Below, piece after piece: positions 1-47,081 of a stretch of DNA of 64,000 nucleotides; the first letter of the stretch is position 1, and each line of letters opens with the position of its first letter. A model generated the notes under the pieces. That model searched no databases. It saw nothing but the letters and a program-made list of their open reading frames with translations, and had not been told where the DNA came from. Location: the IMG/VR virus record IMGVR_UViG_3300017991_000001, positions 1 to 64,000 of that record, one strand, 5' to 3'. A program made the translations under genes and the position numbers.

Positions 1-794
1 ACCACTCCAACTGCCAGGCCATCATCAACTACATCAAGTCGCTCAACCCGAACACCAAGCTCTTCGGCTACGTGAGCACGAACCAGACCTACGCGAACTT
101 CACCTCCAAGACCGACGACTGGGACGACATGGGGGTGCACGGCATCTTCATGGACGAGAGCGGGTACGACTACGGCAAGAACCGCGGCGAGTTCAACGAC
201 CGGGTCGACTACGTGCATGGCAAGGGGCTGATCGCCTTCGCCAACGCCTGGAACACGGACCACATCCTGGGCACCGCCAACGACGCCAGCTACCCGAACA
301 GCACCTACAACTCGGGCGCCGTGGAGTCGAAGCTGAACACCAGCGACTGGATTCTGATGGAGAGCTTCCCCGTCAACACCACGGCCTACACGGACAGCAC
401 GCCGGACGGCTACGAGGCCAAGGCGGAGTGGGCGGCACGCGGATCGAAGCTCCTGTCCCTGCGAGCCACGTACGGCGTGAACTTCGCCGGCAGTTGCGTG
501 ATCGCCGACGGCGTGTCGGGCGAGCAGGACTTCTTCGACTTCGGGTTCATCTCGGCGCTCATGTGGAGTCTGGAGGCCTTCGGCAGCTCCGACACCAGTT
601 ACGGTTCCAGCTCGGCGAAGACCGCGTACCTGACGCGGCCGAACACCGAGGGCCTCAGAAGCTTGTGGAGCCTCAACCCGGCGATCCGCAACGACGTCAA
701 CGACAACGACATCTATCGCCGGTTCGTGGAGCACGCGCAGATGTACGTGGACTTCTCCACCAGCGCGCAGGCCTCGGGGCTGACGAAAGAGTAG
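1..794 (+). CDS. Partial (5'-truncated) glycoside-hydrolase-like / spherulin-4-like TIM-barrel protein
   Basis: Frame is open from the window start (HSNCQAIINYIKSLNPNTKLFGYV...). The GYV and GIFMDE motifs resemble spherulin-4/GH-like barrels. Followed by a terminator. Confidence 0.45.
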   Translation, partial: HSNCQAIINYIKSLNPNTKLFGYVSTNQTYANFTSKTDDWDDMGVHGIFMDESGYDYGKNRGEFNDRVDYVHGKGLIAFANAWNTDHILGTANDASYPNSTYNSGAVESKLNTSDWILMESFPVNTTAYTDSTPDGYEAKAEWAARGSKLLSLRATYGVNFAGSCVIADGVSGEQDFFDFGFISALMWSLEAFGSSDTSYGSSSAKTAYLTRPNTEGLRSLWSLNPAIRNDVNDNDIYRRFVEHAQMYVDFSTSAQASGLTKE

Positions 795-842: not shown

Positions 843-955
843 CATGCCCTCGAGCAATGAATTTCAGCGTCTAAATTACGCCTCAAAGCGCGTTACAATA
901 TACTACGCGTGACTGGCTTTCAGTCAGTTACTCTCCTGAACTACAACCTTCGGTA

Positions 956-1057
956 AATTCGCGTCAGGCCTGCGAGATACCCACCGCGCGCACAGGCGCG
1001 TTGGCAGGATAAGTGGCCGCGAAGGCATTGCCGTTACGCCGGAGCAATCTCCTGTAC
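956..1057 (+). ncRNA. tracrRNA-like scaffold copy 1 with anti-repeat for array 1
   Basis: Homologous to the copies at 4237, 5541 and 6167. Ends in TCTCCTGTAC (1048-1057), complementary to GTACAGGAGG of the array-1 repeat with one G.U pair. Confidence 0.85.
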
Positions 1058-1102
1058 CTACTGAACGTTGTGTTCATTTTCTCAGTTGTCGCAAGACATA
1101 GG

Positions 1103-1253
1103 GGCGGCCCCACGCGTACAGGAGGGTTTGGAAACGGAGGCAGGACAGACATTGTGCCGATTCGGCGGCCCCACGCGTACAGGAGGGTTTGGTTCACCAC
1201 GGCCTGCCAGCCCGCGAAATGCGCGGCGGCCACACGCGTACAGGAGGCTTGTG
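1103..1253 (+). CRISPR. CRISPR array 1 (mini-array): 3 repeats, 2 spacers of 32 nt
   Basis: GGCGGCCCCACGCGTACAGGAGGGTTTGG at 1103 and 1164; degenerate third copy at 1225; 61-nt period. Confidence 0.9.
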
Positions 1254-1270
1254 GACTCCCGGTAGCCGTC

Positions 1271-1351
1271 AACCACGCGCGCAAGGAAGCTCGGAAACAC
1301 GTGTTTCCGGGCCGGACACGTCGAGTCCGTGTGTGCGTGGTTTTTCGTTTT
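1271..1351 (+). promoter_or_regulatory. Palindrome/terminator-like structure between array 1 and the effector gene
   Basis: Perfect 18-bp palindrome CGGAAACACGTGTTTCCG (1292-1309), enclosed by AACCACGCGC / GTGCGTGGTT and followed by T-runs. Confidence 0.5.
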
Positions 1352-1373
1352 ACCATTCTTACAGGAGAGGAAC

Positions 1374-3362
1374 ATGGACGAGAAAAGCGCGATGGAAGAA
1401 GTGGCCAGGTTGGCCGAGGCAAACGCGGTGCGCATGGAAAAAACGGCGCGTTCTCCGCGCATCCAAGTGATGGAGTTCCGGTTTCCGACGCCGGAGGACT
1501 GGGTGAAGGGCATGCGTTATTTCAAAGCCTATGGGGCCAATATGAAGTGGTTGTTCGCCCAGGCGTCGATGTGTCTCAACCTTGCCGGCATACCCGGGTT
1601 CACGCCCAAGAAGAACCTCAACGCAACGGTCGACATGGCCCTGGCCGACGCGTTCATGAAGTTGCTGGGCGGTGAGGTGGTGAACGGAGACGGAAACGGG
1701 GACGGTAAGAAACGCGGTGCGGCTCTGTATGCCTTGCGCAAGGCCTGGATGGACCGGCAGGACGAGCTAGAGAAGGCCGAGAACGTCGGCTTCCGTTTCC
1801 CTTCCTGCATATGGGACGAGGCACGGATCTTCGTGTGGGGCCACTTGAAAAGGAAGGACCCCCGCATGAAACGACGCCACTGCGACCTGTCGGCGGCGGG
1901 CGAGCGCAAGGACGTCAACTACAACACGGAACTGTCACGCATCGTACTGCAGGCGTACGAGTGCCAAACGACCAAACGTGTGAAGTTCGCTGAGGAAACC
2001 GATCCCGTCTCGGGCGAGAAGATGCTGGTAGCCTACCTGGGCATCGTGAAGGGCGTGAGCACGCGGGTCATCCTCGACGGTTGGTTCGAGCGGCTGGTCA
2101 GGAAGGAGGTGATCGAGAACGGCAAACGCGTGATGAAGGTCGTGCGCGAGCGGGACCGCTTTGAGATGGAGCCGCGAGCCAAGGGCGTCGTGGAGAATAT
2201 CCTCTCCGGTGAATACACGCTGCGTCGGGGCGAGTTCTACTTCCGCAAGCGCCGCAGCAAGGGCGGGCCCCGCAAGCTACGTCCCTTCCTGGATCTTTGT
2301 TACGACCCTCATGCCAAACGCACTGCCCGCCAGCTTAAGAAGGAGGAAGAGGAGGGCGAGACCACCAAGCGTGGCATGCGCTACGCGGCGCTGTTCTTCC
2401 ACAAGACGGACGGCGTGGGTAAGGACGAAGGGCTTGTTTATTTCCCCCACCTGTCAACCGACATCACGACAAGCAAGGAGAAGTTGGACAAGTACCGGTT
2501 CTATTCCCCGCCCGTGAACAACATGATGGGTGTACTGCACGATATCCGGGCGCGGCGCAACGCCGTCGTCCACCGCAAGCGTTCGGCGCTCGGGGTTCGC
2601 GAGTTCCGCACCGCCATCAAGAAGAAGGAGAAGTTGTACACGTTGCGGCGGGAGAAGTTCATCACGAAGAACATGAACATCATGGCGAACGACTTCGTGC
2701 GCTGCCTGCGAAGCTGGAACGTGGGCAACGTGATCATGCCGTGCGTGCCCAAGAACATCGAGGTGATGGGCGAGTCGTTCCCGTGGGCCGCGTTCGTCGA
2801 TATCATGCACACCAAGTGTGACGACGCGGACATCATCTTCCTGACCGGCGACGCGCACCTGGAAGCGCTGCAGGCTGCGGCCAACGAGGAGACCGCCGCC
2901 ATCAGGGCACGTGATGATCTGGAGGACGAGGAGAAGGAACGGGCCATCAAGGTCATCAAGGAACGCACCAAGGCCCACAAGGAAATGCTCTCCGGCAACA
3001 TCTCGGAGCGCGCGGACACGCTCATCGAAACCATTGAGAAGAAACTCGAGGAGCGGGGTATGCGCAAGGAGGAGGACGAGGAGTCCCTTCTCGAAGAGGA
3101 AAGCAAGAGCAAGAAGAAGAGGAAACCCCGCAAGCGCGTGAAGCCGGTGCGGAAGGTCATGGTCAAGACGAAGGACGATGACGGCAGGACTGTGAAAAAA
3201 GACGCCAGCAAACTCCGCACGAAGACGCGCAAGCGTGCGGACCCCAAGGCGAAGCACGAGAAGTGCTGGGCTCGCCACAGGGGAGGACAGCAGGGCGAAG
3301 TCGAAATGAAGGTTTTCGAGCAGGAAGAGGCTAAGAGGAAAGACAGGAAATCAGGAGGATAA
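1374..3362 (+). CDS. Nuclease-dead TnpB/Cas12f-like type V effector with C-terminal charged extension (662 aa)
   Basis: RBS AGGAGAGG before ATG 1374. Cas12f-like wedge segment ILSGEYTLRRGEFYF...FLDLCYD. The RuvC-I position reads MRYAALFFH (no D). Arg/Lys-rich bridge helix, then KNMNIMANDFVRCLRSWNVGNVIMPCV (RuvC-II, no E) and FPWAAFVDIMHTKCDDADIIF. No Zn finger or RuvC-III. Flanked by CRISPR arrays. Confidence 0.8.
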   Translation: MDEKSAMEEVARLAEANAVRMEKTARSPRIQVMEFRFPTPEDWVKGMRYFKAYGANMKWLFAQASMCLNLAGIPGFTPKKNLNATVDMALADAFMKLLGGEVVNGDGNGDGKKRGAALYALRKAWMDRQDELEKAENVGFRFPSCIWDEARIFVWGHLKRKDPRMKRRHCDLSAAGERKDVNYNTELSRIVLQAYECQTTKRVKFAEETDPVSGEKMLVAYLGIVKGVSTRVILDGWFERLVRKEVIENGKRVMKVVRERDRFEMEPRAKGVVENILSGEYTLRRGEFYFRKRRSKGGPRKLRPFLDLCYDPHAKRTARQLKKEEEEGETTKRGMRYAALFFHKTDGVGKDEGLVYFPHLSTDITTSKEKLDKYRFYSPPVNNMMGVLHDIRARRNAVVHRKRSALGVREFRTAIKKKEKLYTLRREKFITKNMNIMANDFVRCLRSWNVGNVIMPCVPKNIEVMGESFPWAAFVDIMHTKCDDADIIFLTGDAHLEALQAAANEETAAIRARDDLEDEEKERAIKVIKERTKAHKEMLSGNISERADTLIETIEKKLEERGMRKEEDEESLLEEESKSKKKRKPRKRVKPVRKVMVKTKDDDGRTVKKDASKLRTKTRKRADPKAKHEKCWARHRGGQQGEVEMKVFEQEEAKRKDRKSGG

Positions 3363-3364
3363 CT

Positions 3365-4207
3365 GTGAACAAAATCAGACCCGCTGTCGTTCCACCCCCC
3401 GCGATCATGTACACCCCGACGGGGGCGGGATTGCCGGACACGCAGTTTAAGAGCGTACTAGCAGCCGTAAGCTCTGCGATCTGCGGAAGCTACAAGCGAC
3501 ACAAGAAGTTGGTGAGAGACACACTACACAAGCATGGACCGCTATTGAGCTGCATGGACCAGGAGCAGCGAGACACGCTGATGGAGTCCATCGAAGGGCA
3601 GGGCGTTACGTACAGGGAAGTGGATCGCGTACTTTCCTGCTACAGCGTGGTGCCTCGTTACATAGGCTTGGCGCCGGCACTGGTGGACAACAGCGCGGTA
3701 AGCGTGTTGTGGTGGAACAACCTTCCAAAGCGCGTCAAGCAGGACGCGTTGGCTGACAAGCTGGTACGCGTGAAGCGTGCCAACAGTTGGGTGCAGAAGA
3801 AGTTTTCGGACCTCACCCCGAAAGACGTGCGGCAGGTGTTCGATGTGGGTGACGGAAGCAAAGGGTACCTGCCCGTACGCACGCAGCATACTGCGCCGCG
3901 TGCCCGCAAAAGCGTGTACATGCAACCCGCGGGGCCGGTGTCGGTCAACGAGGACGACCCCAACAAGTTCCTCATCGAGGTCACCAGCAAAGGCAAGCGA
4001 GAAGTGGTGGCCATGTCCGAGCACGAGATGAAGTACACGCTCGGACAGGCGCGCGTGCTGACGGGAAGGAACGCGGTGGATTGGGACGCGGTCGAGAAGG
4101 AGCTGCGCGATTTAATCGCGACGTGGCGCGCGTCCAGGTCCAAGCATAAGGCCGTGTTGGCGACCTGCGCCGACGAAGTCGAGAAAATATTGGACGGCAA
4201 CGTGTAG
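3365..4207 (+). CDS. Hypothetical protein, operonic partner of the dead Cas12f-like effector (280 aa)
   Basis: GTG start 2 nt after the effector stop, with AGGAGG RBS; no recognisable motif. Confidence 0.8.
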   Translation: MNKIRPAVVPPPAIMYTPTGAGLPDTQFKSVLAAVSSAICGSYKRHKKLVRDTLHKHGPLLSCMDQEQRDTLMESIEGQGVTYREVDRVLSCYSVVPRYIGLAPALVDNSAVSVLWWNNLPKRVKQDALADKLVRVKRANSWVQKKFSDLTPKDVRQVFDVGDGSKGYLPVRTQHTAPRARKSVYMQPAGPVSVNEDDPNKFLIEVTSKGKREVVAMSEHEMKYTLGQARVLTGRNAVDWDAVEKELRDLIATWRASRSKHKAVLATCADEVEKILDGNV

Positions 4208-4236
4208 CTGAACGAAGCAGCGGTACGATGTGCGGA

Positions 4237-4338
4237 AATTCGCGTCAGGCCTGCGAGATGTCCGCCGCGCACACTGAGTGCGTTGGCAGGGTAAGTGGCC
4301 GTGAAGGCGCTTCGGCGCCGGATACGTCTTCCCTACAC
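4237..4338 (+). ncRNA. tracrRNA-like scaffold copy 2 with anti-repeat for array 2
   Basis: Stems CCTGC/GCAGG, GCGCAC/GTGCGT and GGCGC-TTCG-GCGCC. Anti-repeat TCTTCCCTACAC (4327-4338) pairs with GTATAGGGAAGA of the repeat. Confidence 0.88.
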
Positions 4339-4384
4339 ATCCGCATGTCGTACCGCTACTCTGTTTCTAACCCTACATGTTGGT

Positions 4385-5474
4385 GTCGCACCCACGCGTA
4401 TAGGGAAGATTGGACCCAATTTTAGATACTCGCTGCAGCGCCGTCGTCGCACCCACGCGTATAGGGAAGATTGGAGAAACGATTTGACTAGGCATGCGGA
4501 GTCGTCGTCGCACCCACGCGTATAGGGAAGATTGGGCGCCCAGCGCGTCCGCCACGTGTTCGCGCTCGTCGCACCCACGCGTATAGGGAAGATTGGAAAG
4601 CTCCCTCGAAGGCGTCGCCCAACAGGCCGTCGCACCCACGCGTATAGGGAAGATTGGGCTTACGCCGGCAAGCTCGGCATTGAGGGCCTGTCGCACCCAC
4701 GCGTATAGGGAAGATTGGCAGCGGCTGGACCGGCGACTCGGTCTGCCCCAGTCGCACCCACGCGTATAGGGAAGATTGGCGTATCATGAACAGGTCGCAC
4801 CCACGCGTATAGGGAAGATTGGCGGCTCGAGGTGTTCGCTACAGGAGCGTCGCACCCGCGCGTATAGGGAAGATTGGGCACCCTTCCCGCGAGTCGCGTG
4901 CTGCAGCACGTCGCACCCACACGTATAGGGAAGATTGGTCCTCCCTCAGCGTTTCCTCCGCTTTGCAGTCGTTGCACCCACGCAGATAGGGAAGATTGGA
5001 AGGGCCAACCAAAGGCACTGCCGGTCGCCAAGTCGCACCCACGCGTATAGGGAAGATTGGTTTTGGAGGCGAGCAACGCGGCGACGGGCAGCGTCGCGCC
5101 CACGCGTATAGGGAAGATTGGCTAAAGGATGTTGATCTCCTGTCGCACCCACGCGTATAGGGAAGATTGGATCGATAGGCGTAATTCCGGTTCAGGTGCC
5201 GTGTCGCACCCACGCGTATAGGGAAGATTGGGCCCCCGATCCCGAAATCGAAAAGACGGACCCGTCGCACCCACGCGTATAGGGAAGATTGGGCTTCGAT
5301 GTTCTGTGTCGTAGCCTTGAGCGGGTCGCACCCGCGCGTATAGGGAAGATTGGGTCCTTTTCCCGGACCGCCACGGGTTCGGGCGGTCGCACCCACGCGT
5401 ATAAGGAAGATTGGCCGTCAAGAATCGCCCCAACACCGCGTGTGCGTCGCACCCACGCACACGAGGAGGGTTGG
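4385..5474 (+). CRISPR. CRISPR array 2: 19 repeats, 18 spacers
   Basis: Repeat GTCGCACCCACGCGTATAGGGAAGATTGG (29 nt). Spacers mostly 32 nt, also 14, 26, 20 and 31. A degenerate last repeat at 5446 indicates + orientation. Confidence 0.98.
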
Positions 5475-5540
5475 GTCCTGGGTTCGTTGTCGCGCTTACG
5501 TGCTGGGAATGCATACAGACTACAGCGGTGGACACATGTA

Positions 5541-5638
5541 AATTCGCGTCAGGCCTGCGAGATGTCCGCCGCGCACACTGAGTGCGTTGGCAGGGTAAGT
5601 GGCCGTGAAGGTGCTTGCACCGGATACGTCTTCCCTAC
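5541..5638 (+). ncRNA. tracrRNA-like scaffold copy 3 with anti-repeat for array 3
   Basis: Near-identical to copy 2, with a compensatory hairpin GGTGC-TT-GCACC; anti-repeat TCTTCCCTAC at 5629-5638. Confidence 0.88.
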
Positions 5639-5680
5639 CATGTGTCATGCCGTTGTTCTCTTTATGGTCCATATGTTGGT

Positions 5681-6133
5681 GTCGCGCCCACGCGTATGGG
5701 GAAGGTTGGGCTTATGCACGCATCAGGGAGATCAGCGCACCGTCGCGCCCACGCGTATGGGGAAGGTTGGTCGTGGAGACGAGCAAAGCCGCGACGGGCG
5801 CCGTCGCGCCCACGCGTATGGGGAAGGTTGGTACGCCGAGTGCCTCGGACAACTGCGGGACAAGCCGCGCCTGCGCTTATAGGGAAGATTGGCCATCCCG
5901 CCTGGGGACAAATGGAGATTGCGTCGCGCCCACGCGTGTAGGGAAGGCTGGAAACTGTATGACCGTGTGGCGATCGGCCATGTATCGCGCCTACGCGTGT
6001 AGGGAAAGCTGGCTGCATCTGGCGTCAGATTTCATGCTGCGTAGGTAGGACCCACGCGTGTAGGGAAGGCTGGGCGCAGCTCGCCGTTATCGGAGCACGA
6101 AACCTGTTGAACCCACCCGCGTAAGAAGGCTGG
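5681..6133 (+). CRISPR. CRISPR array 3: 8 repeats, 7 spacers
   Basis: GTCGCGCCCACGCGTATGGGGAAGGTTGG at 5681, 5742 and 5803; progressively degenerate copies at 5864, 5923, 5984, 6045 and 6106. Confidence 0.95.
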
Positions 6134-6166
6134 ATCACCGAATAAATAGCAGTGCGGTATGTGGAG

Positions 6167-6272
6167 AATCGCGTCAGGCCTGCGAGATGTCCGCCGCGCG
6201 CACAGGCGCGTTGGCAGGATAAGTGGCCGTGAAGGCGCTTCGGCGCCGGATACGCTCTCCTCACACATACGT
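6167..6272 (+). ncRNA. tracrRNA-like scaffold copy 4 with anti-repeat for array 4
   Basis: Homologous scaffold. Anti-repeat GCTCTCCTCACACATACGT (6254-6272) pairs with ACGTA(C/T)G(C/T)GAGGAGGGC of the array-4 repeats. Confidence 0.88.
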
Positions 6273-6316
6273 CCGCATGTCGTGCTGCTGGTTAATCCAT
6301 ACCTCTGTATCTTGGC

Positions 6317-6772
6317 GTCAAACCTACGTACGCGAGGAGGACTGGCTAACGCGCCCAGAATGAGAGAATACCATGATGTCAAACCCATGTACGCGAGGAG
6401 GACTGGACGTTCACCGTCGCTATCTAAAGCGCCTTGCGGTCAAACTCACGTACGCGAGGAGGGTTGGGCTACCCTCAGCTACCGGCGGACGAGGACACGG
6501 TCAAACCCACATACGCGAGGAGAGCTGGGCCCACCTAGGACGGGCGGGCGGATTGCAACCGTCAAACCCACGTACGCGAGGAGGGCTGGTGATAAGCGAG
6601 GAGAACTAAGACCGAGGCAAGGTCAAACCCACGTATGCGAGGAGGGCTGGGCTGGCGTGGATGATGGTCGTTACCAGGATACGTCAAACCCACGTATGTG
6701 AGGAGGGCTGGCCTCGGCATGAACTGCTGCCTGCGTACTCGGCGTCGAACCCACGTACGCGAGGAGGGTTGG
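6317..6772 (+). CRISPR. CRISPR array 4: 8 repeats, 7 spacers of 32 nt
   Basis: Consensus GTCAAACCCACGTACGCGAGGAGGGCTGG at 6317, 6378, 6439, 6500, 6561, 6622, 6683 and 6744; exact 61-nt period. Confidence 0.95.
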
Positions 6773-6858: not shown

Positions 6859-7551
6859 CTATTCGGTCATGTAACCCGCGTCCAGCATCATCTCCCGATA
6901 CATCTTCAGCGTGTGAGCGATCTGCTCTTCGTCCAGCACGTCCTCCCAGGCGCCGGGCTCGCCCTTCGTCTCGGAGATGTGCTTGCCCCTGAGCTGGGTC
7001 TTCATGTCAGCGGTGTCCTCATGCAGCGAGTCGGTGAAGGCCTTCACCGTGACGGGGTCGACCTCGTGGGCGATGCGCTTCACGTCTTCCGGCATGGGAG
7101 GCAGCCCGAGGTACTCGCGGATGCGGTCCACCGCGGCGGGGAGGTCGTTGTAGACGTCCTCGTACTTGAGCATCAGGATGGCGGGGTGCTTCTTCATATA
7201 GAAGTACTCGGTGCTCATCTTCTTCGGGTAGCGCAGGCGCTTCTTGTAGGGCGTGCGTCCGAACTTGGGCAGGCGCTGCAGCGAGGCCATCACGTCCAGC
7301 GGGTTGCGGTAGGTGTAGATGATGAAGGCCCGGCGGACGATGTCGAAGGGCGGCTCGTAGTGGTGGACCTTGACAACCCGCCAGCGCGTGCTGTTGAGCT
7401 GCTGGCGAAGCTCCTCGTCGACCTGGGCGGCCGAGGTGCCGGCGTAGTCGTAGGGGTGGCCCCGGGCTTCCAGGAGCTTCTGGACCGTCATGTAGGACAG
7501 GGTTGATCCGGTTCGATACATTCCGTTGCAGATAACGAACTGCTTGTGCAC
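6859..7551 (-). CDS. Sulfotransferase (Sulfotransfer_1/3-like)
   Basis: 5'-PSB loop GMYRTGST, VVKVH, 3'-PB YRNPLDVMAS, LKYED; GTG start inferred. Confidence 0.85.
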   Translation of the reverse strand: MHKQFVICNGMYRTGSTLSYMTVQKLLEARGHPYDYAGTSAAQVDEELRQQLNSTRWRVVKVHHYEPPFDIVRRAFIIYTYRNPLDVMASLQRLPKFGRTPYKKRLRYPKKMSTEYFYMKKHPAILMLKYEDVYNDLPAAVDRIREYLGLPPMPEDVKRIAHEVDPVTVKAFTDSLHEDTADMKTQLRGKHISETKGEPGAWEDVLDEEQIAHTLKMYREMMLDAGYMTE

Positions 7552-8270
7552 GGTTCCACCTCTGGGATCTCGTACCCGGCGTGCTTCATCATCCGACCAC
7601 ACTGCGCCACGCATGCCCTTATGGTAGCGGCTGATAGGTGTTTACGCCAGGTGTCAGGTTTGCCCAAATCGTCGGAAATGTGGTGGTCGCGCACGTTTGT
7701 GATGTTCTTGATGGTGTCGTTGGGCATCGTGTCGGCGTGGGCCTTGACCACCTCAGCCGAGTGCCGGCGGGCGATCTCCCTGGCTTCGGGCAGCGTCACG
7801 TGCAGGTCCAGGAAGTTGGAGACCATGCAGACGACGCGGGGCACGTCCAGGATCATCTCCTCGTACTTGATCATCAGGCAGGGCTTCCAGTGCAGCTGGT
7901 CGAAGTAGTCATCCTCGTAACGGTCCCAGCCGTCGGGGATGTACTCGCCCCACTCGCCGGTCTGGGCCGTGCAGCGCTTCTGGGCGGAGGCGGCTATGTC
8001 CAGGGGGTTGCGGTAGGTGAACAGGAACCTGGCCTCCCTCATGACGTCGACCTGCCGGCCGCGCAGCACGTAGAAGTGCACCTTGGCCAGCATGGGAGGA
8101 GGCGTCGGGTAGGTGATCACGAAGCGGCCATAGCTGTCGCGGAGGCAGTACGGGGTGGACTCAATCAGCTCCACGTCGCCGAAGTTCAGCTCCAAGAGCT
8201 CACGTGCGATGTTGTAGACCAGCGTGGACCCCGAGCGGTACATCCCGTTGCAGACCACGAATCGACTCAC
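7488..8270 (-). CDS. Sulfotransferase, tandem paralogue
   Basis: GMYRSGST, LAKVH, YRNPLDIAAS, IKYEE; GTG start inferred. Confidence 0.85.
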   Translation of the reverse strand: MSRFVVCNGMYRSGSTLVYNIARELLELNFGDVELIESTPYCLRDSYGRFVITYPTPPPMLAKVHFYVLRGRQVDVMREARFLFTYRNPLDIAASAQKRCTAQTGEWGEYIPDGWDRYEDDYFDQLHWKPCLMIKYEEMILDVPRVVCMVSNFLDLHVTLPEAREIARRHSAEVVKAHADTMPNDTIKNITNVRDHHISDDLGKPDTWRKHLSAATIRACVAQCGRMMKHAGYEIPEVEPCTSSSLSATECIEPDQPCPT

Positions 8271-9073
8271 AGCGCCCCCCTCTCTGTTTTGCTCATCAAC
8301 TCCTTGGCCCGATCCGGTTCCATCTCGCCCATGGCGACCATGAGCAGGCGCGCGTAGTTCTTCTGCCGTTCGCTGGCGTTCTCGTAGGCCCTCTTGCCAA
8401 TATAGACGGTCACGCCGTAGACCAGCAAGCCCATGATCAGGATGACCCCGATCACCGTGATCACCGCCGACATGGGCCACATGTTGACGTCGCGCCCGGC
8501 GCGCATCTCGGTCTGGAGCGTGGTTTGCATCTTCGTGAGCTTGTTCGACAAGCCCACTTGCCCCGAGGCTGTGGCGTCTGCCTGTCCCGACATGTGGCCG
8601 ACCTTGGTGTTGATATCGGACAGCGCCTTCATCGTGTTGTCCAGCTTCGCCTCCATCTTGTTGGTGACGTTGACGTTGGCCTCGAACTTGGCGTTGATCG
8701 TGTTCTCCAGGCTCGCCATGGCTGTCATGGTATTGGTCAGCTTCGTGTCGATGTCGGCTTGCATCTTATTGTCGATCTTGGCCTCCAAGTTAATCAGGCC
8801 CTTTAGCGCCACCTCCATCTTCTGGAGCTGCGCCACGATGTGGCCGGAGAGCTGGTTGCTGTTGGAGGACATGTCGGCCCGCACGCGGGCGGCGGTGTCC
8901 TCCACGATCTTGTCCGTGTCCACCTTCTCCACCGCTATTTCCGGTGCCGGCATCGAAATCTCAGGTTTGTGGTCGATGATCGTCGGGGCCATCTTGGTCT
9001 TGTTGTCGGCGATGCAGCCGGTCAGCCATATCAACAAAATCAACAACGGCATCAATGACTTGAGCTTGGGCAT
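8267..9073 (-). CDS. Lipoprotein with coiled coil and C-terminal TM helix (unimolecular spanin-like)
   Basis: Signal peptide with lipobox LTGC, long heptad-like helix, TM segment AVITVIGVILIMGLLVYGVTVYI. Confidence 0.55.
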   Translation of the reverse strand: MPKLKSLMPLLILLIWLTGCIADNKTKMAPTIIDHKPEISMPAPEIAVEKVDTDKIVEDTAARVRADMSSNSNQLSGHIVAQLQKMEVALKGLINLEAKIDNKMQADIDTKLTNTMTAMASLENTINAKFEANVNVTNKMEAKLDNTMKALSDINTKVGHMSGQADATASGQVGLSNKLTKMQTTLQTEMRAGRDVNMWPMSAVITVIGVILIMGLLVYGVTVYIGKRAYENASERQKNYARLLMVAMGEMEPDRAKELMSKTERGAL

Positions 9074-34535: not shown

Positions 34536-35116
34536 TCAACTTCGAGCGGTGCTACGACCGTTCGGACGAGGACCTCCAGCGGTTCCTGATCTTCTGCATC
34601 TGCGTTGCCGGCAAGAACGCCAAGACCGTCGACGCGAAGGTGTGCGAGTTTCTGGAGCCGTGCGAACACCGCAGGGAGACACCCTTCGAGTTCCTGCGGT
34701 ACCTGGTCAACATCGAGCGCTTGGACTTCGCGCTCGCGAAGGTCAAGATGGGGAAGTACAGGCTGCTCGAGCGGTCGTTTACGTACCTGGTCGAGAAAGA
34801 GTTGGACCTCCGGTCTTGTACGGTCGATCAGCTGGAAATGGTGCCCGGCATCGGTCCCAAGACCGCGAGGTTCTTTCTGCTGTACACGCGGGAGTACTTC
34901 CGGGGGGCGGTACTCGACACGCACGTGCTCCAGCACCTGGTGGCTTGCGGATGCAAGAAGGTGCCGAAGCAGACACCGCAGGACCCGAAGGTGTACCGGA
35001 AGTGGGAGGCGGTCGTGCTGGAGCTGGCCGCGGCCAACGGAATGGACCCGGCCGAGTACGACAACGAGATCTGGAAGAGCCGGAGCCCCTCAGCGGAGTT
35101 GGGGGTGTCTCCGTAG
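34532..35116 (+). CDS. HhH-GPD DNA glycosylase-like protein (OGG-like)
   Basis: LEMVPGIGPKTARFFL HhH motif with catalytic Lys; AVLDTHVL. Confidence 0.85.
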   Translation: MINFERCYDRSDEDLQRFLIFCICVAGKNAKTVDAKVCEFLEPCEHRRETPFEFLRYLVNIERLDFALAKVKMGKYRLLERSFTYLVEKELDLRSCTVDQLEMVPGIGPKTARFFLLYTREYFRGAVLDTHVLQHLVACGCKKVPKQTPQDPKVYRKWEAVVLELAAANGMDPAEYDNEIWKSRSPSAELGVSP

Positions 35117-35179
35117 CTCAACAGGCAGAGCGACGCTCTCTAAAAGCGGTGGTTCCGGGTTCGAGTCCCGGCGGAGGCA
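35107..35179 (+). tRNA. Amber suppressor tRNA (anticodon CUA), CCA not encoded
   Basis: Acceptor GTCTCCG/CGGAGGC plus A73; D-arm GCTC/GAGC; anticodon loop CTCTAAA; T-arm CCGGG-TTCGAGT-CCCGG. Confidence 0.9.
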
Positions 35180-35308
35180 TTTATCGTCGATTATTGGTGT
35201 AGTCAGTGCGGAAAGCCGATTTACAGCGGCAGTCGATTAGTCTGTGATGATTGCAAAGATGCCAGGTACTTCGGGGATAAAACTCCGCAGGGGGAAGATC
35301 TCCAAACC

Positions 35309-45452: not shown

Positions 45453-47081
45453 ATGGGTTACAACGACGAAGTGCCGTCCGGCCAGGGGCTGGATGGTCTG
45501 CCCGGCTTTTTCATCAAGAAGTCAGGCGCCCCGCACACGACGCAGTTCCTGAACTTCGGCAATCCGACCGTCTTCAGGATACTGCCGGAGATCAACGTCA
45601 ACGGGCATGAGGTGCCCTGGCGGCTGGGTCCGGGGCAGGGCGAGTTCTCGAACTGGATCAAGGGTTTGAGGGTCGCCACCAAGATGGGGGTGAACGGCAA
45701 GTTCACCTGCATCGCCAACGTGAAGGGCAAGCCCCCTCGGGAGCTTGGCCCCATCGACGTCTTTGCCAATGCCGTACACAAGGCCGTCGAGCGCAACAAG
45801 CGCGCCTTCCCGGAGGAGTGGGAGGACTGGGTGACGTATCTCCCCAAAACCGGCATCAAGCTGGGCATCCCGGACTATCACGCCGGCGTGCAGGGCCTCC
45901 TGTTCGAGCACGGAGGCAAGCAGTTCATGGACGAGAAGGGTAATCCGCAGCCCAGGCACCCGGTCATCCTGTTGATGAAGACCAGTGCCCGGTTCAAGCT
46001 GCAGGACATGTGCAACGTGGAGGTGCCGGGCTACTCGGGCGCCCCCGAGGATTACAACCGGCGCTATCCGATCGGGGACGCCTTCTCCCTCGGGGGTGGC
46101 CACCTGCTCAAGATCTTCCCGGTGCCGGACGACGGCTCCACGCGGGCCCACTACGACATCGAGGTGTTGCAGGAGGTGGTGCCCATTCCGAAGTCGGTGT
46201 CCATGGAATGGCGTCCTTGGGACGAGATCCTGGACTACCTGGACGAGGCCCAGCAGGTTAACCTCGTCGTCAACCACTTCCCGCCGGAGGTGGTGGACTT
46301 CGCGCTCAGCCAGGGACAGTACGGACATCTCGTGCCGCCCCACGTGAAGGGCGCGTTCGAGCAGATGCGTTTGCGGATGCAGGGTGGCGGCGGCGTGGCC
46401 GTGCAGCCGTACGGCACGCAGGGGTATCAGCAACCTCAGCAGCCCCAGCAGCCCCAGCAGCCCCAGCAGCCGCAGGGGCAGATCCAGGCGGCTCCGGTAC
46501 CCGCCGAGGTACCCGCCGTGGACTCCCCCGAGTTGAGGCAGAGCGTGGGCACGCAGGCAACTCAGCCGGCTGCCACGCCTCCCGCCACCGGACCCATCGT
46601 CAACTTCGGGGAGCAGAACTATACGCAGCCCTCGCCCACGGCGAGTCCTGCGCAGCCCGCCCAGCCCGCCCAGCCGGCGCAGCCCGCACAACCCGTGCAG
46701 CCTGCCCAACCGGCGCAACCGGCGCAGCCCGCTCAGCCCACCCAACCGGTCAGGGCTGTAAACTTCGGTGGTGCGGAGGCACAGACTCCGATGCCGGCAC
46801 CGGAATCTCAGGCCACTACGGCTGCACCACCGCCTCCGCAGCCGCCCAACGACCCGGACGTGCCGCCGCCTCCACAGGTGGCGCCCGCGCCCAACGCCGC
46901 ACCCGCGGCGGCAGCAGCCACGCCTGAGCAGTTCAACCAGCCTGTGGCCGGGGGTCAGGCTCCGCAGCAACCCATCGGCGATCCCGCGCAGACGCAGAAC
47001 GCGCAGGCCGATACGCTCGCCCGTCTCCGGGCGGCGCGTGAGCAGGTCGACGGACAGGCTCCGCAGCAACCGCAGCAGTAG
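45453..47081 (+). CDS. Probable ssDNA-binding/replication protein with a long Gln/Pro-rich tail
   Basis: Lies between polymerase and RecA; FRILP motif typical of phage SSBs; ~230-aa low-complexity tail. Confidence 0.5.
   Translation: MGYNDEVPSGQGLDGLPGFFIKKSGAPHTTQFLNFGNPTVFRILPEINVNGHEVPWRLGPGQGEFSNWIKGLRVATKMGVNGKFTCIANVKGKPPRELGPIDVFANAVHKAVERNKRAFPEEWEDWVTYLPKTGIKLGIPDYHAGVQGLLFEHGGKQFMDEKGNPQPRHPVILLMKTSARFKLQDMCNVEVPGYSGAPEDYNRRYPIGDAFSLGGGHLLKIFPVPDDGSTRAHYDIEVLQEVVPIPKSVSMEWRPWDEILDYLDEAQQVNLVVNHFPPEVVDFALSQGQYGHLVPPHVKGAFEQMRLRMQGGGGVAVQPYGTQGYQQPQQPQQPQQPQQPQGQIQAAPVPAEVPAVDSPELRQSVGTQATQPAATPPATGPIVNFGEQNYTQPSPTASPAQPAQPAQPAQPAQPVQPAQPAQPAQPAQPTQPVRAVNFGGAEAQTPMPAPESQATTAAPPPPQPPNDPDVPPPPQVAPAPNAAPAAAAATPEQFNQPVAGGQAPQQPIGDPAQTQNAQADTLARLRAAREQVDGQAPQQPQQ
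46428..46748 (+). repeat. Coding 9-bp tandem repeats (QQP and AQP units)
   Basis: CAGCAGCCC-type units at ~46428-46475 and GCNCARCCN-type units at ~46650-46748. Confidence 0.85.

Follow-up and report, generated by a model that had tools for sequence, protein, structure and literature searches.

The window analysed here, the first 64 kb (64,000 nucleotides, nt) of the complete 211,084-bp virus genome IMGVR_UViG_3300017991_000001, carries close to its left end a phage module of CRISPR arrays without adaptation genes, in which each of four arrays appears to stand behind its own RNA resembling a trans-activating CRISPR RNA (tracrRNA). Genes for a 662-amino-acid (aa) effector candidate and a 280-aa partner, both with good ribosome-binding sites, sit between the first and the second array. 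The arrays have the geometry of type I-E and the larger protein is predicted to have the fold of a Cas12f/TnpB-type RuvC domain in its core; the system is rated as type V-like with arrays of I-E origin. The whole module is known from two phage lineages only, this phage and one other huge-phage lineage, called the sister phage below. Because the layout recurs in the sister phage despite a different context and diverged proteins, the conserved unit of the module is the tracr-like element, the array, the large protein and the small protein. In the literature searched, no description was found of a phage that combines a very divergent dCas12f-like protein with arrays derived from type I-E, a co-evolving tracr for each of them and an orphan partner protein.

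Arrays of type I-E geometry

Four arrays (A1 to A4) occupy positions 1103-6772 on the + strand, with 37 repeats, all of them 29 nt long, and 33 spacers at a period of 61 nt. Most spacers (28 of 33) measure 32 nt; the remaining five are 14, 20, 26, 30 and 31 nt long. Spacer G+C content (61.3%) is near that of the phage itself (62.7%), and no further array or repeat copy was found elsewhere in the 211-kb genome. Since the last repeats of A1 and A2 are degenerate, the leader end is taken to be the left one. The mutation-rich repeats of A3 and A4 suggest old, decaying arrays, while the eight identical repeats at the leader end of A2 suggest more recent growth.

The I-E repeat type of interest for a host system is GTCGC...CCCACGCGT. 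A pattern scan through one genome per prokaryote species found a real I-E array in a Bacillota metagenome-assembled genome (L030), with 31 repeats at a 61-nt period, the consensus GTCGTCCCCACGCGTGTGGGGGTGAACCG and a Cas6e encoded in the same genome (E-value 5e-60). In register with the L030 repeat, those of A2 and A3 are identical at 20 of 29 positions, that of A1 at 18/29 and that of A4 at 15/29. A repeat of the sister phage, with its canonical hairpin still in place, also speaks for an I-E ancestry. As a candidate host the Bacillota genome found no support: neither its spacers nor the rest of it could be matched significantly with the phage or with array A1. A degenerate repeat pattern run against viral contigs found no other contig.

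The likeness to type I-E arrays, of which the L030 array and those with Thermus- and E. coli-type repeats are examples, takes in the 29-nt repeats, the 32-nt spacers, the 61-nt period, the orientation and 20 of 29 repeat positions. It does not take in the stable Cas6e hairpin or the ...ACCG handle, both of which the window lacks. The repeat hairpins have minimum free energies of -3.6 to -6.7 kcal/mol, against -14.4 kcal/mol for the real I-E repeat, and the repeats end in TTTGG, ATTGG, GTTGG or GCTGG where the I-E repeat has AACCG. Also unlike type I-E arrays, those of the window come without I-E cas genes, Cas1, Cas2, Cas6e and Cas7e having no match at E <= 1 in the complete 211-kb phage genome, and keep company instead with a protein of class 2 type and a tracr-like RNA.

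Anti-repeats that change with their repeats

Alignment of the four regions upstream of the arrays reveals a conserved element of ~90 nt, with one copy for each array and none in the rest of the genome. The element forms GC-rich stems, and the consensus fold has compensatory pairs. Directly 3' of the element lies an anti-repeat of 10-13 nt, complementary to the spacer-proximal half of the repeat of its own array; the pairing comprises 9-13 positions per array and stops 0-3 nt short of the spacer. The A1 anti-repeat ATCTCCTGTACC pairs with GTACAGGAGGG in the A1 repeat, its own repeat being the best partner. Array by array, A1 pairs CTCCTGTAC with GTACAGGAG, A2 and A3 pair TCTTCCCTAC with GTAGGGAAGA, and A4 pairs CTCTCCTC with GAGGAGGG. 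A second, weaker helix joins the region downstream of the anti-repeat to the centre of the repeat.

The sister phage has the same arrangement. Each of its arrays has an upstream scaffold of its own, unrelated in sequence to those of the window and with the same layout, a short hairpin followed by a matching anti-repeat (CCATCCCCAC against GTGGGGATGG and CCACCC against GGGTGG). In the window, the anti-repeat:repeat helix consists of 7 pairs, of which 0 are invariant and 4 changed on both sides; pairing holds in 92.9% of cells. For the structure as a whole, only 4 of 500 shuffles attained its covariation score, and slid controls all collapse. Duplex energies are uninformative for whole upstream regions of this GC-rich sequence and informative when limited to the anti-repeat window, where 4 of 6 anti-repeats (A1, A2, A4 and sister array 1) pair best with their cognate repeat. 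These patterns argue that each array has its own putative tracr-like RNA, co-varying with its repeat.

The orientation of the arrays is based on the degenerate terminal repeats, the orientation of the I-E repeat, the co-orientation with the genes and terminator-like hairpins, which are located after A1 and after the second array of the sister phage. Promoter scans found no sigma-70 promoters upstream of the scaffolds, and exact-pattern scaffold scans of viral contigs returned unrelated coding DNA only.

Could the upstream element be a leader only, that is a promoter and an integration signal for Cas1-Cas2 and integration host factor, with the anti-repeat a by-product of leader-repeat duplication? 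The element does stand at the leader position, it is conserved among the arrays of one genome as leaders are, and the tracr-like RNA is predicted from DNA sequence. However, leaders need no complementarity to the repeat, and here the complementary stretch changes with the repeat in four window and two sister arrays, in the latter beside an unrelated scaffold. The element is also GC-rich, with stems that show compensatory changes, and a leader without a tracr function seems quite improbable to us.

A second alternative is that the arrays serve a host type I-E Cascade, with host Cas6e, Cascade and Cas3 acting against competitors as they would with virus-borne mini-arrays, and that the neighbouring proteins are unrelated or accessory. 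The I-E-like geometry and repeat sequence are what this predicts, as is a phage without cas genes of its own by sequence. The sister repeats, moreover, keep stable I-E-like hairpins of -15.6 and -13.1 kcal/mol, the first in an array with the canonical I-E hairpin CCCCA-TACGCG-TGGGG followed by ATGGGCC. In the window, however, little is left of the hairpin, TTGG or CTGG has taken the place of the 3' handle read by Cascade, and Cascade has no need of four repeat families with co-varying upstream anti-repeats. The module is also syntenic with a Cas12f-fold protein in both lineages, and we consider service to a host Cascade distinctly unlikely. The anti-repeat covers the 3' strand of the former hairpin and the start of the handle, an arrangement compatible with transcripts that are kept out of Cascade.

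The original prediction, made from the letters of this DNA, had described four arrays with 29-nt repeats and mostly 32-nt spacers, an I-E-like repeat sequence, a weakened Cas6e hairpin with a handle changed to TTGG or CTGG, and a 3' half of the repeat re-used for tracr pairing. The first three descriptions hold, and the fourth is supported by the co-varying anti-repeats, in the sister phage too; as an interpretation the prediction is partly supported.

A predicted Cas12f/TnpB-type fold in the 662-aa protein

Neither the 662-aa protein (P0001) nor its 280-aa partner matches a family in Pfam, NCBIfam, PADLOC, PHROGs or the PDB sequences, at strict or at lax (E 10) settings, and word-index homology searches returned only the proteins themselves and the copies of the sister phage. 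Across 1.84 billion representative proteins, exhaustive searching with HMMER turned up one cluster besides that of P0001, the sister protein P0002 (575 aa, 27% identity, E 9e-20). Language-model features in the ESM atlas gave a weak lead to IS605 OrfB/TnpB (score 0.83-0.84), taken as a lead only, and nothing for the 280-aa protein. A profile alignment of P0001/P0002 by hhalign against 13 TnpB proteins from Bacillota genomes pairs residues 305-498 with TnpB 147-325 at a score of 25.7 (P 0.022); 100 column shuffles reached a mean of 14.5 (standard deviation 2.3, maximum 22.5) and the reversed query 15.7.

The full-length AlphaFold2 (AF2) model has a predicted local distance difference test (pLDDT) of 41 and is unusable, so a sub-domain model alone was used. 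This model, of residues 296-512 (pLDDT 65, predicted template modelling score 0.63), has the order beta-beta-alpha-alpha-beta-alpha-beta-alpha. Its best PDB matches by Foldseek are almost all Cas12f, dCas12f, Cas12g, Cas12k or Cas12m, with Cas12f and dCas12f at the top. Alignment by VIA-align gives Z scores of 11.3 for CnCas12f1, 10.6 for AsCas12f, 10.1-10.2 for dCas12f and 8.5 for ISDra2 TnpB, with a root-mean-square deviation (rmsd) of ~3 Å over 123-146 residues. In a search independent of Foldseek, through 48,161 representative chains, the top 15 are all Cas12, TnpB or Fanzor, and the first unrelated RNase-H-like folds appear at Z 6.5. Because the language-model lead, the profile alignment and the AF2 and structure searches agree, the modelled core of the protein (residues 331-495) is a Cas12f/TnpB-type RuvC domain. 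The regions outside the core are an N-terminal part of ~330 aa and a Lys/Glu-rich helical tail.

The claim of a "type V effector" in the original prediction survives in part. By predicted fold, a single large effector candidate with a RuvC-like, TnpB-derived domain does lie beside a CRISPR array, and its core has the Cas12f/TnpB RuvC fold. Membership in a Cas12 sequence family does not stand, since no curated Cas12 subtype profile matches, and the protein lacks a zinc ribbon, a RuvC-III segment and the RuvC-II Glu.

A RuvC site that is probably inactive

In dCas12f, C-terminal truncations take away part of the RuvC site while the fold is kept (PMC13472631). The dCas12f proteins are documented RNA-guided DNA binders for which no tracrRNA was found, and some of them adjoin CRISPR arrays and are proposed repressors (PMC13472631). 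The 662-aa protein likewise combines a Cas12f/TnpB fold with a truncated or mutated RuvC site, as dCas12f and TldR do. In the hhalign register the RuvC-II Glu aligns to Asn452, which is invariant in P0001 and P0002, the RuvC-I Asp aligns to Asp351 in P0001 and to a Tyr in P0002, and no segment corresponds to RuvC-III, so that an intact D-E-D triad is missing from an alignment that is moderately reliable at the level of residues. Structural matches end at about residue 495, a point that matches the very end of the truncated dCas12f chain, and the tail past this point is Lys/Glu-rich and helical, without a RuvC-III motif or CxxC pairs. As to a zinc ribbon or TNB domain, PF07282 has no match in the six frames of the complete genome and no paired CxxC occurs after residue 480.

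The protein might nonetheless be an active type V nuclease that cuts through a non-canonical site, or the 280-aa partner might be the nuclease, the two carrying out ordinary interference against rival elements. The Cas12f/TnpB-like fold is in keeping with this, and the partner is strictly co-conserved. Acidic residues are found nearby in P0001 (Asp346, Asp351, Glu352 and Asp492), and of these Asp351/Glu352 and Asp492 lie close to where such residues would be expected; two glutamates, Glu352 and Glu467, are invariant. Against cutting stand the RuvC-I and RuvC-III acidic residues, which are not conserved in the sister, the invariant Asn at the RuvC-II position and the missing zinc ribbon. Family searches, moreover, found no nuclease signature in the partner, which is not recognisable as a sigma factor or a helix-turn-helix (HTH) protein either. 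On this evidence an active nuclease is unlikely. That the 662-aa protein is nuclease-dead is held to roughly two in three, because the register is moderately reliable and acidic residues are conserved nearby.

The module in the sister phage

P0002 is encoded on phage contigs of 163-198 kb from the same sediment metagenome series, with arrays of 61-nt period to its left and right. The gene directly downstream encodes a protein homologous to the 280-aa partner (25% identity, E 1e-16), whose family comprises two clusters only. Many genes are common to both phages, at 36-66% identity; divergence is far greater among the module proteins, and the genomic context of the module differs. No cas1 was found in the sister record, which is 78% complete.

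The sister module lies at L004 9100-13150 and L010 5100-8930, with flanking genes that match G000 at ~91-107 kb. Its second array differs between the two assemblies by a duplicated partial spacer, and IMG/VR labels the sister record a provirus.

Origin of the spacers

The spacers at 5061-5092 (A2) and 5771-5802 (A3) are identical at 25 of 32 positions in register; their neighbouring spacers are unrelated, and the next-best pair reaches ~19/32. A pair of this kind would be expected from two separate acquisitions that drew on variants of one target, and it suggests these, possibly by priming. It also argues that real adaptation machinery built the arrays. This bears on the idea that the arrays are decoy or anti-CRISPR RNAs that soak up host Cas6e, Cascade or Cas1-Cas2, an idea to which the mimicry of a host-type repeat inside a phage genome lends itself. 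A decoy is hard to reconcile with 33 different spacers of a strict 32-nt length, with a spacer pair that points to real acquisition and with a degraded Cas6e-binding hairpin, and it is the explanation that we find highly improbable.

Insertion of the spacers by a host type I-E Cas1-Cas2 is most likely, because of the geometry, the repeat ancestry and a phage without cas1 and cas2. The original prediction had named cas1 and cas2 genes of the phage's own as a finding that would speak against a host source; they were looked for and none was found, an absence that does not by itself prove host-driven acquisition.

Some matches to the arrays appear to owe nothing to common origin. A short contig in two runs resembling 5779-5813 was rejected as a chance match, as it crosses a spacer/repeat border with two gaps. 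The 31 nt at 5875-5905, a degenerate A3 repeat and the next spacer, are 93.5% identical to a tRNA-Pro gene in two Mycobacterium prophages (E 0.02), probably by chance.

Proposed mechanism

In the mechanism that we propose, and that we regard as an even call, the four arrays of I-E ancestry would be transcribed from the + strand, a tracr-like RNA of its own standing in front of each. At its 3' end every tracr has an anti-repeat that would pair with the cognate repeat, chiefly in the half nearest the spacer and to a lesser degree in the middle; judging by complementarity and covariation, this duplex may serve as the guide handle in place of the Cas6e hairpin that has been lost. Trimming of the tracr:repeat duplex would fall to a host RNase or to the effector, and the guides would load the very divergent 662-aa Cas12f/TnpB-fold protein. 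With its RuvC-II glutamate, RuvC-III segment and zinc ribbon all gone, the loaded protein would most likely bind the DNA of a competitor mobile element or of the host without cutting it, blocking transcription or replication, and the 280-aa protein conserved alongside it may be delivered in this way. Host type I-E Cas1-Cas2 would most likely have inserted the spacers. A dead binder of this kind would resemble dCas12f or TldR in its action. In its fullest form the proposal is a class 1/class 2 hybrid of an undescribed subtype, in which host I-E Cas1-Cas2 writes 32-nt spacers and array-specific tracrRNAs divert the transcripts from Cas6e and Cascade into a dead Cas12f-like protein and its 280-aa partner for programmable silencing or recruiting; we offer this full form tentatively, as a rather doubtful whole.

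Several observations count against the proposal. Protospacers above chance were found neither in the phage's own genome, nor in the sister-phage loci and whole sister record, the INPHARED phages or the PLSDB plasmids, and given these negative searches the targeting of DNA by the module is putative. Two spacers tried in the viral contigs of IMG/VR gave no protospacer, and one degenerate spacer pattern in the JGI metagenomes returned the phage itself only. Contigs from four sequencing runs (sediment 2018, seawater 2021) have identical arrays without new spacers, the sole array polymorphism being a loss of 43 nt (4751-4793) from A2 in one seawater run, equal to a repeat and a truncated 14-nt spacer. 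No I-E host array with a repeat closer than that of L030 was found. The runs that hold the locus are DNA only, and for the tracr-like RNA a transcript, its ends and its processing are predicted; folding energies, for their part, favour the + strand for A2-A4 only. On the side of the proteins, the fold assignment comes from a model of moderate confidence with a two-sequence alignment behind it, the full-length model has the low pLDDT given above, the residue-level alignment of the active site is uncertain and acidic residues are present around it, and a complex prediction for the 662-aa and 280-aa proteins gave no answer.

Relation to known systems

The module lacks the marks of a canonical Cas12 nuclease (triad, zinc ribbon and profile match), and the window lacks those of a functional I-E array (hairpin, handle and cas genes). 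With expression and effector binding predicted, the module would work most like tracrRNA-dependent type V-F together with the dead-binder class of dCas12f and TldR.

To dCas12f, including its CRISPR-array-associated cluster and the sigma-E-coupled systems (PMC13472631; PDB 9n9c/9n9m), the likeness lies in the Cas12f-like RuvC fold (Z 10.1, rmsd 3.0 Å over 134 residues), in a structural match that reaches the end of the dCas12f chain, and in a gene beside CRISPR arrays that is tightly linked to a second small protein gene. Unlike dCas12f, to which it has no detectable sequence similarity, the 662-aa protein is larger by its N-terminal region and its tail and is phage-encoded, with arrays of I-E geometry, separate tracr-like RNAs and a partner that is not a recognisable sigma factor or HTH protein. 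Type V-F (Cas12f) with tracrRNA provides the best structural matches, CnCas12f1 and AsCas12f, and the guide architecture predicted here, a scaffold RNA with a 3' anti-repeat and a repeat-spacer CRISPR RNA (crRNA), is also that of type V-F. In contrast to type V-F, the RuvC catalytic residues are not conserved here and there is no zinc ribbon/TNB domain, the repeats are 29 nt and the spacers strictly 32 nt, four tracr/array pairs have diverged repeats, and cas1, cas2 and cas4 are absent.

The TldR proteins, TnpB-like nuclease-dead repressors that are often prophage-encoded, share the TnpB-superfamily fold (ISDra2 TnpB, Z 8.5), a truncated, inactivated RuvC, carriage by a phage and, presumably, RNA-guided DNA binding. 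A TldR, however, is directed to one host promoter by a single, unchanging omega-RNA-like guide, whereas the module has 33 spacers in arrays. Virus-borne mini-CRISPR arrays, CasPhi and CasLambda are alike in being arrays of huge phages without an adaptation module and in their presumed use in conflicts between mobile elements. CasPhi and CasLambda, however, are active nucleases, need no tracrRNA to process their crRNA themselves and are distant structural matches (Z 7.0-7.5), whereas mini-arrays rely on host effectors.

If the proposal is true, adaptation and interference modules of different CRISPR classes can recombine in nature, and arrays shaped by the I-E integrase are read by a TnpB/Cas12f-derived protein through newly evolved tracrRNAs. 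A phage-borne, multi-guide and probably non-cutting Cas12-like binder, together with its partner protein, would then join the few exapted TnpB/Cas12f systems (TldR, dCas12f-sigma-E). It would also provide a natural case of one effector with four repeat/tracr pairs, useful for the study of guide scaffold co-evolution and for orthogonal guide design. Since the effector family is invisible to sequence searches, with two clusters among 1.84 billion proteins, similar systems may be missed routinely.

Layout of the module and neighbouring genes

The phage genome has 123-bp direct terminal repeats and encodes phage-type replication genes for a DNA polymerase, a primase, helicases and an SbcC-like protein. 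The features of the module are collected in Table 1.

Table 1. Coordinates of the arrays, tracr-like elements and protein genes in the window.
Feature	Position	Strand	Description
Tracr-like element of A1	955-1058	+	Scaffold 955-1046, then anti-repeat 1047-1058 (ATCTCCTGTACC); one of four conserved copies
Array A1	1103-1253	+	3 repeats of 29 nt, 2 spacers of 32 nt; final repeat degenerate
Gene for the 662-aa effector candidate (P0001)	1374-3362	+	Predicted Cas12f/TnpB-like RuvC fold at residues ~331-495; one homologue only
Gene for the 280-aa partner protein	3365-4207	+	AGGAGG ribosome-binding site; starts 2 nt past the effector stop codon
Tracr-like element of A2	4236-4338	+	Scaffold 4236-4325; anti-repeat 4326-4338 (GTCTTCCCTACAC)
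Array A2	4385-5474	+	19 repeats, 18 spacers; repeats 1-8 identical, final one degenerate
Tracr-like element of A3	5540-5639	+	Scaffold, then anti-repeat 5628-5639
Array A3	5681-6073	+	7 repeats, 6 spacers; mutations in repeats mount along the array
Tracr-like element of A4	6166-6266	+	Scaffold, then anti-repeat 6254-6266 (GCTCTCCTCACAC)
Array A4	6317-6772	+	8 repeats, 7 spacers; most divergent repeat family (GTCAAACCCACGTACGCGAGGAGGGCTGG)

To the left of the module, only the 3' portion of a 488-aa gene falls inside the window, as an open reading frame (ORF) at 72-794 (+), the gene itself beginning ahead of the window's first base. By coordinates its start lies inside the copy of the 123-bp terminal repeat at the far end of the genome, and the gene is whole on contig L011; its product has a weak Spherulin4-like match only, and a strong terminator stands 3' of the ORF at 817-838. 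Directly 3' of A4, overlapping ORFs at 6859-7614 and 7488-8480 (-) encode sulfotransferase domains (Pfam PF00685, PF13469), an odd cargo for a phage.

Farther to the right, a tRNA gene at 35106-35180 (+) has the anticodon CTA of an amber suppressor; ARAGORN labels it tRNA-Pyl, and it scores 61 bits against the Rfam tRNA model. The suppressor prompted the idea of genome-wide TAG recoding, which was found unsupported, as TAG ends 42 of 158 long ORFs with high G+C at third codon positions. At 46428-46749, tandem repeats of 9 nt (CAGCCCGCC, CAGCAGCCC) encode a low-complexity stretch rich in Pro, Ala and Gln within the ORF at 45453-47081, which is located just downstream of the DNA polymerase gene.

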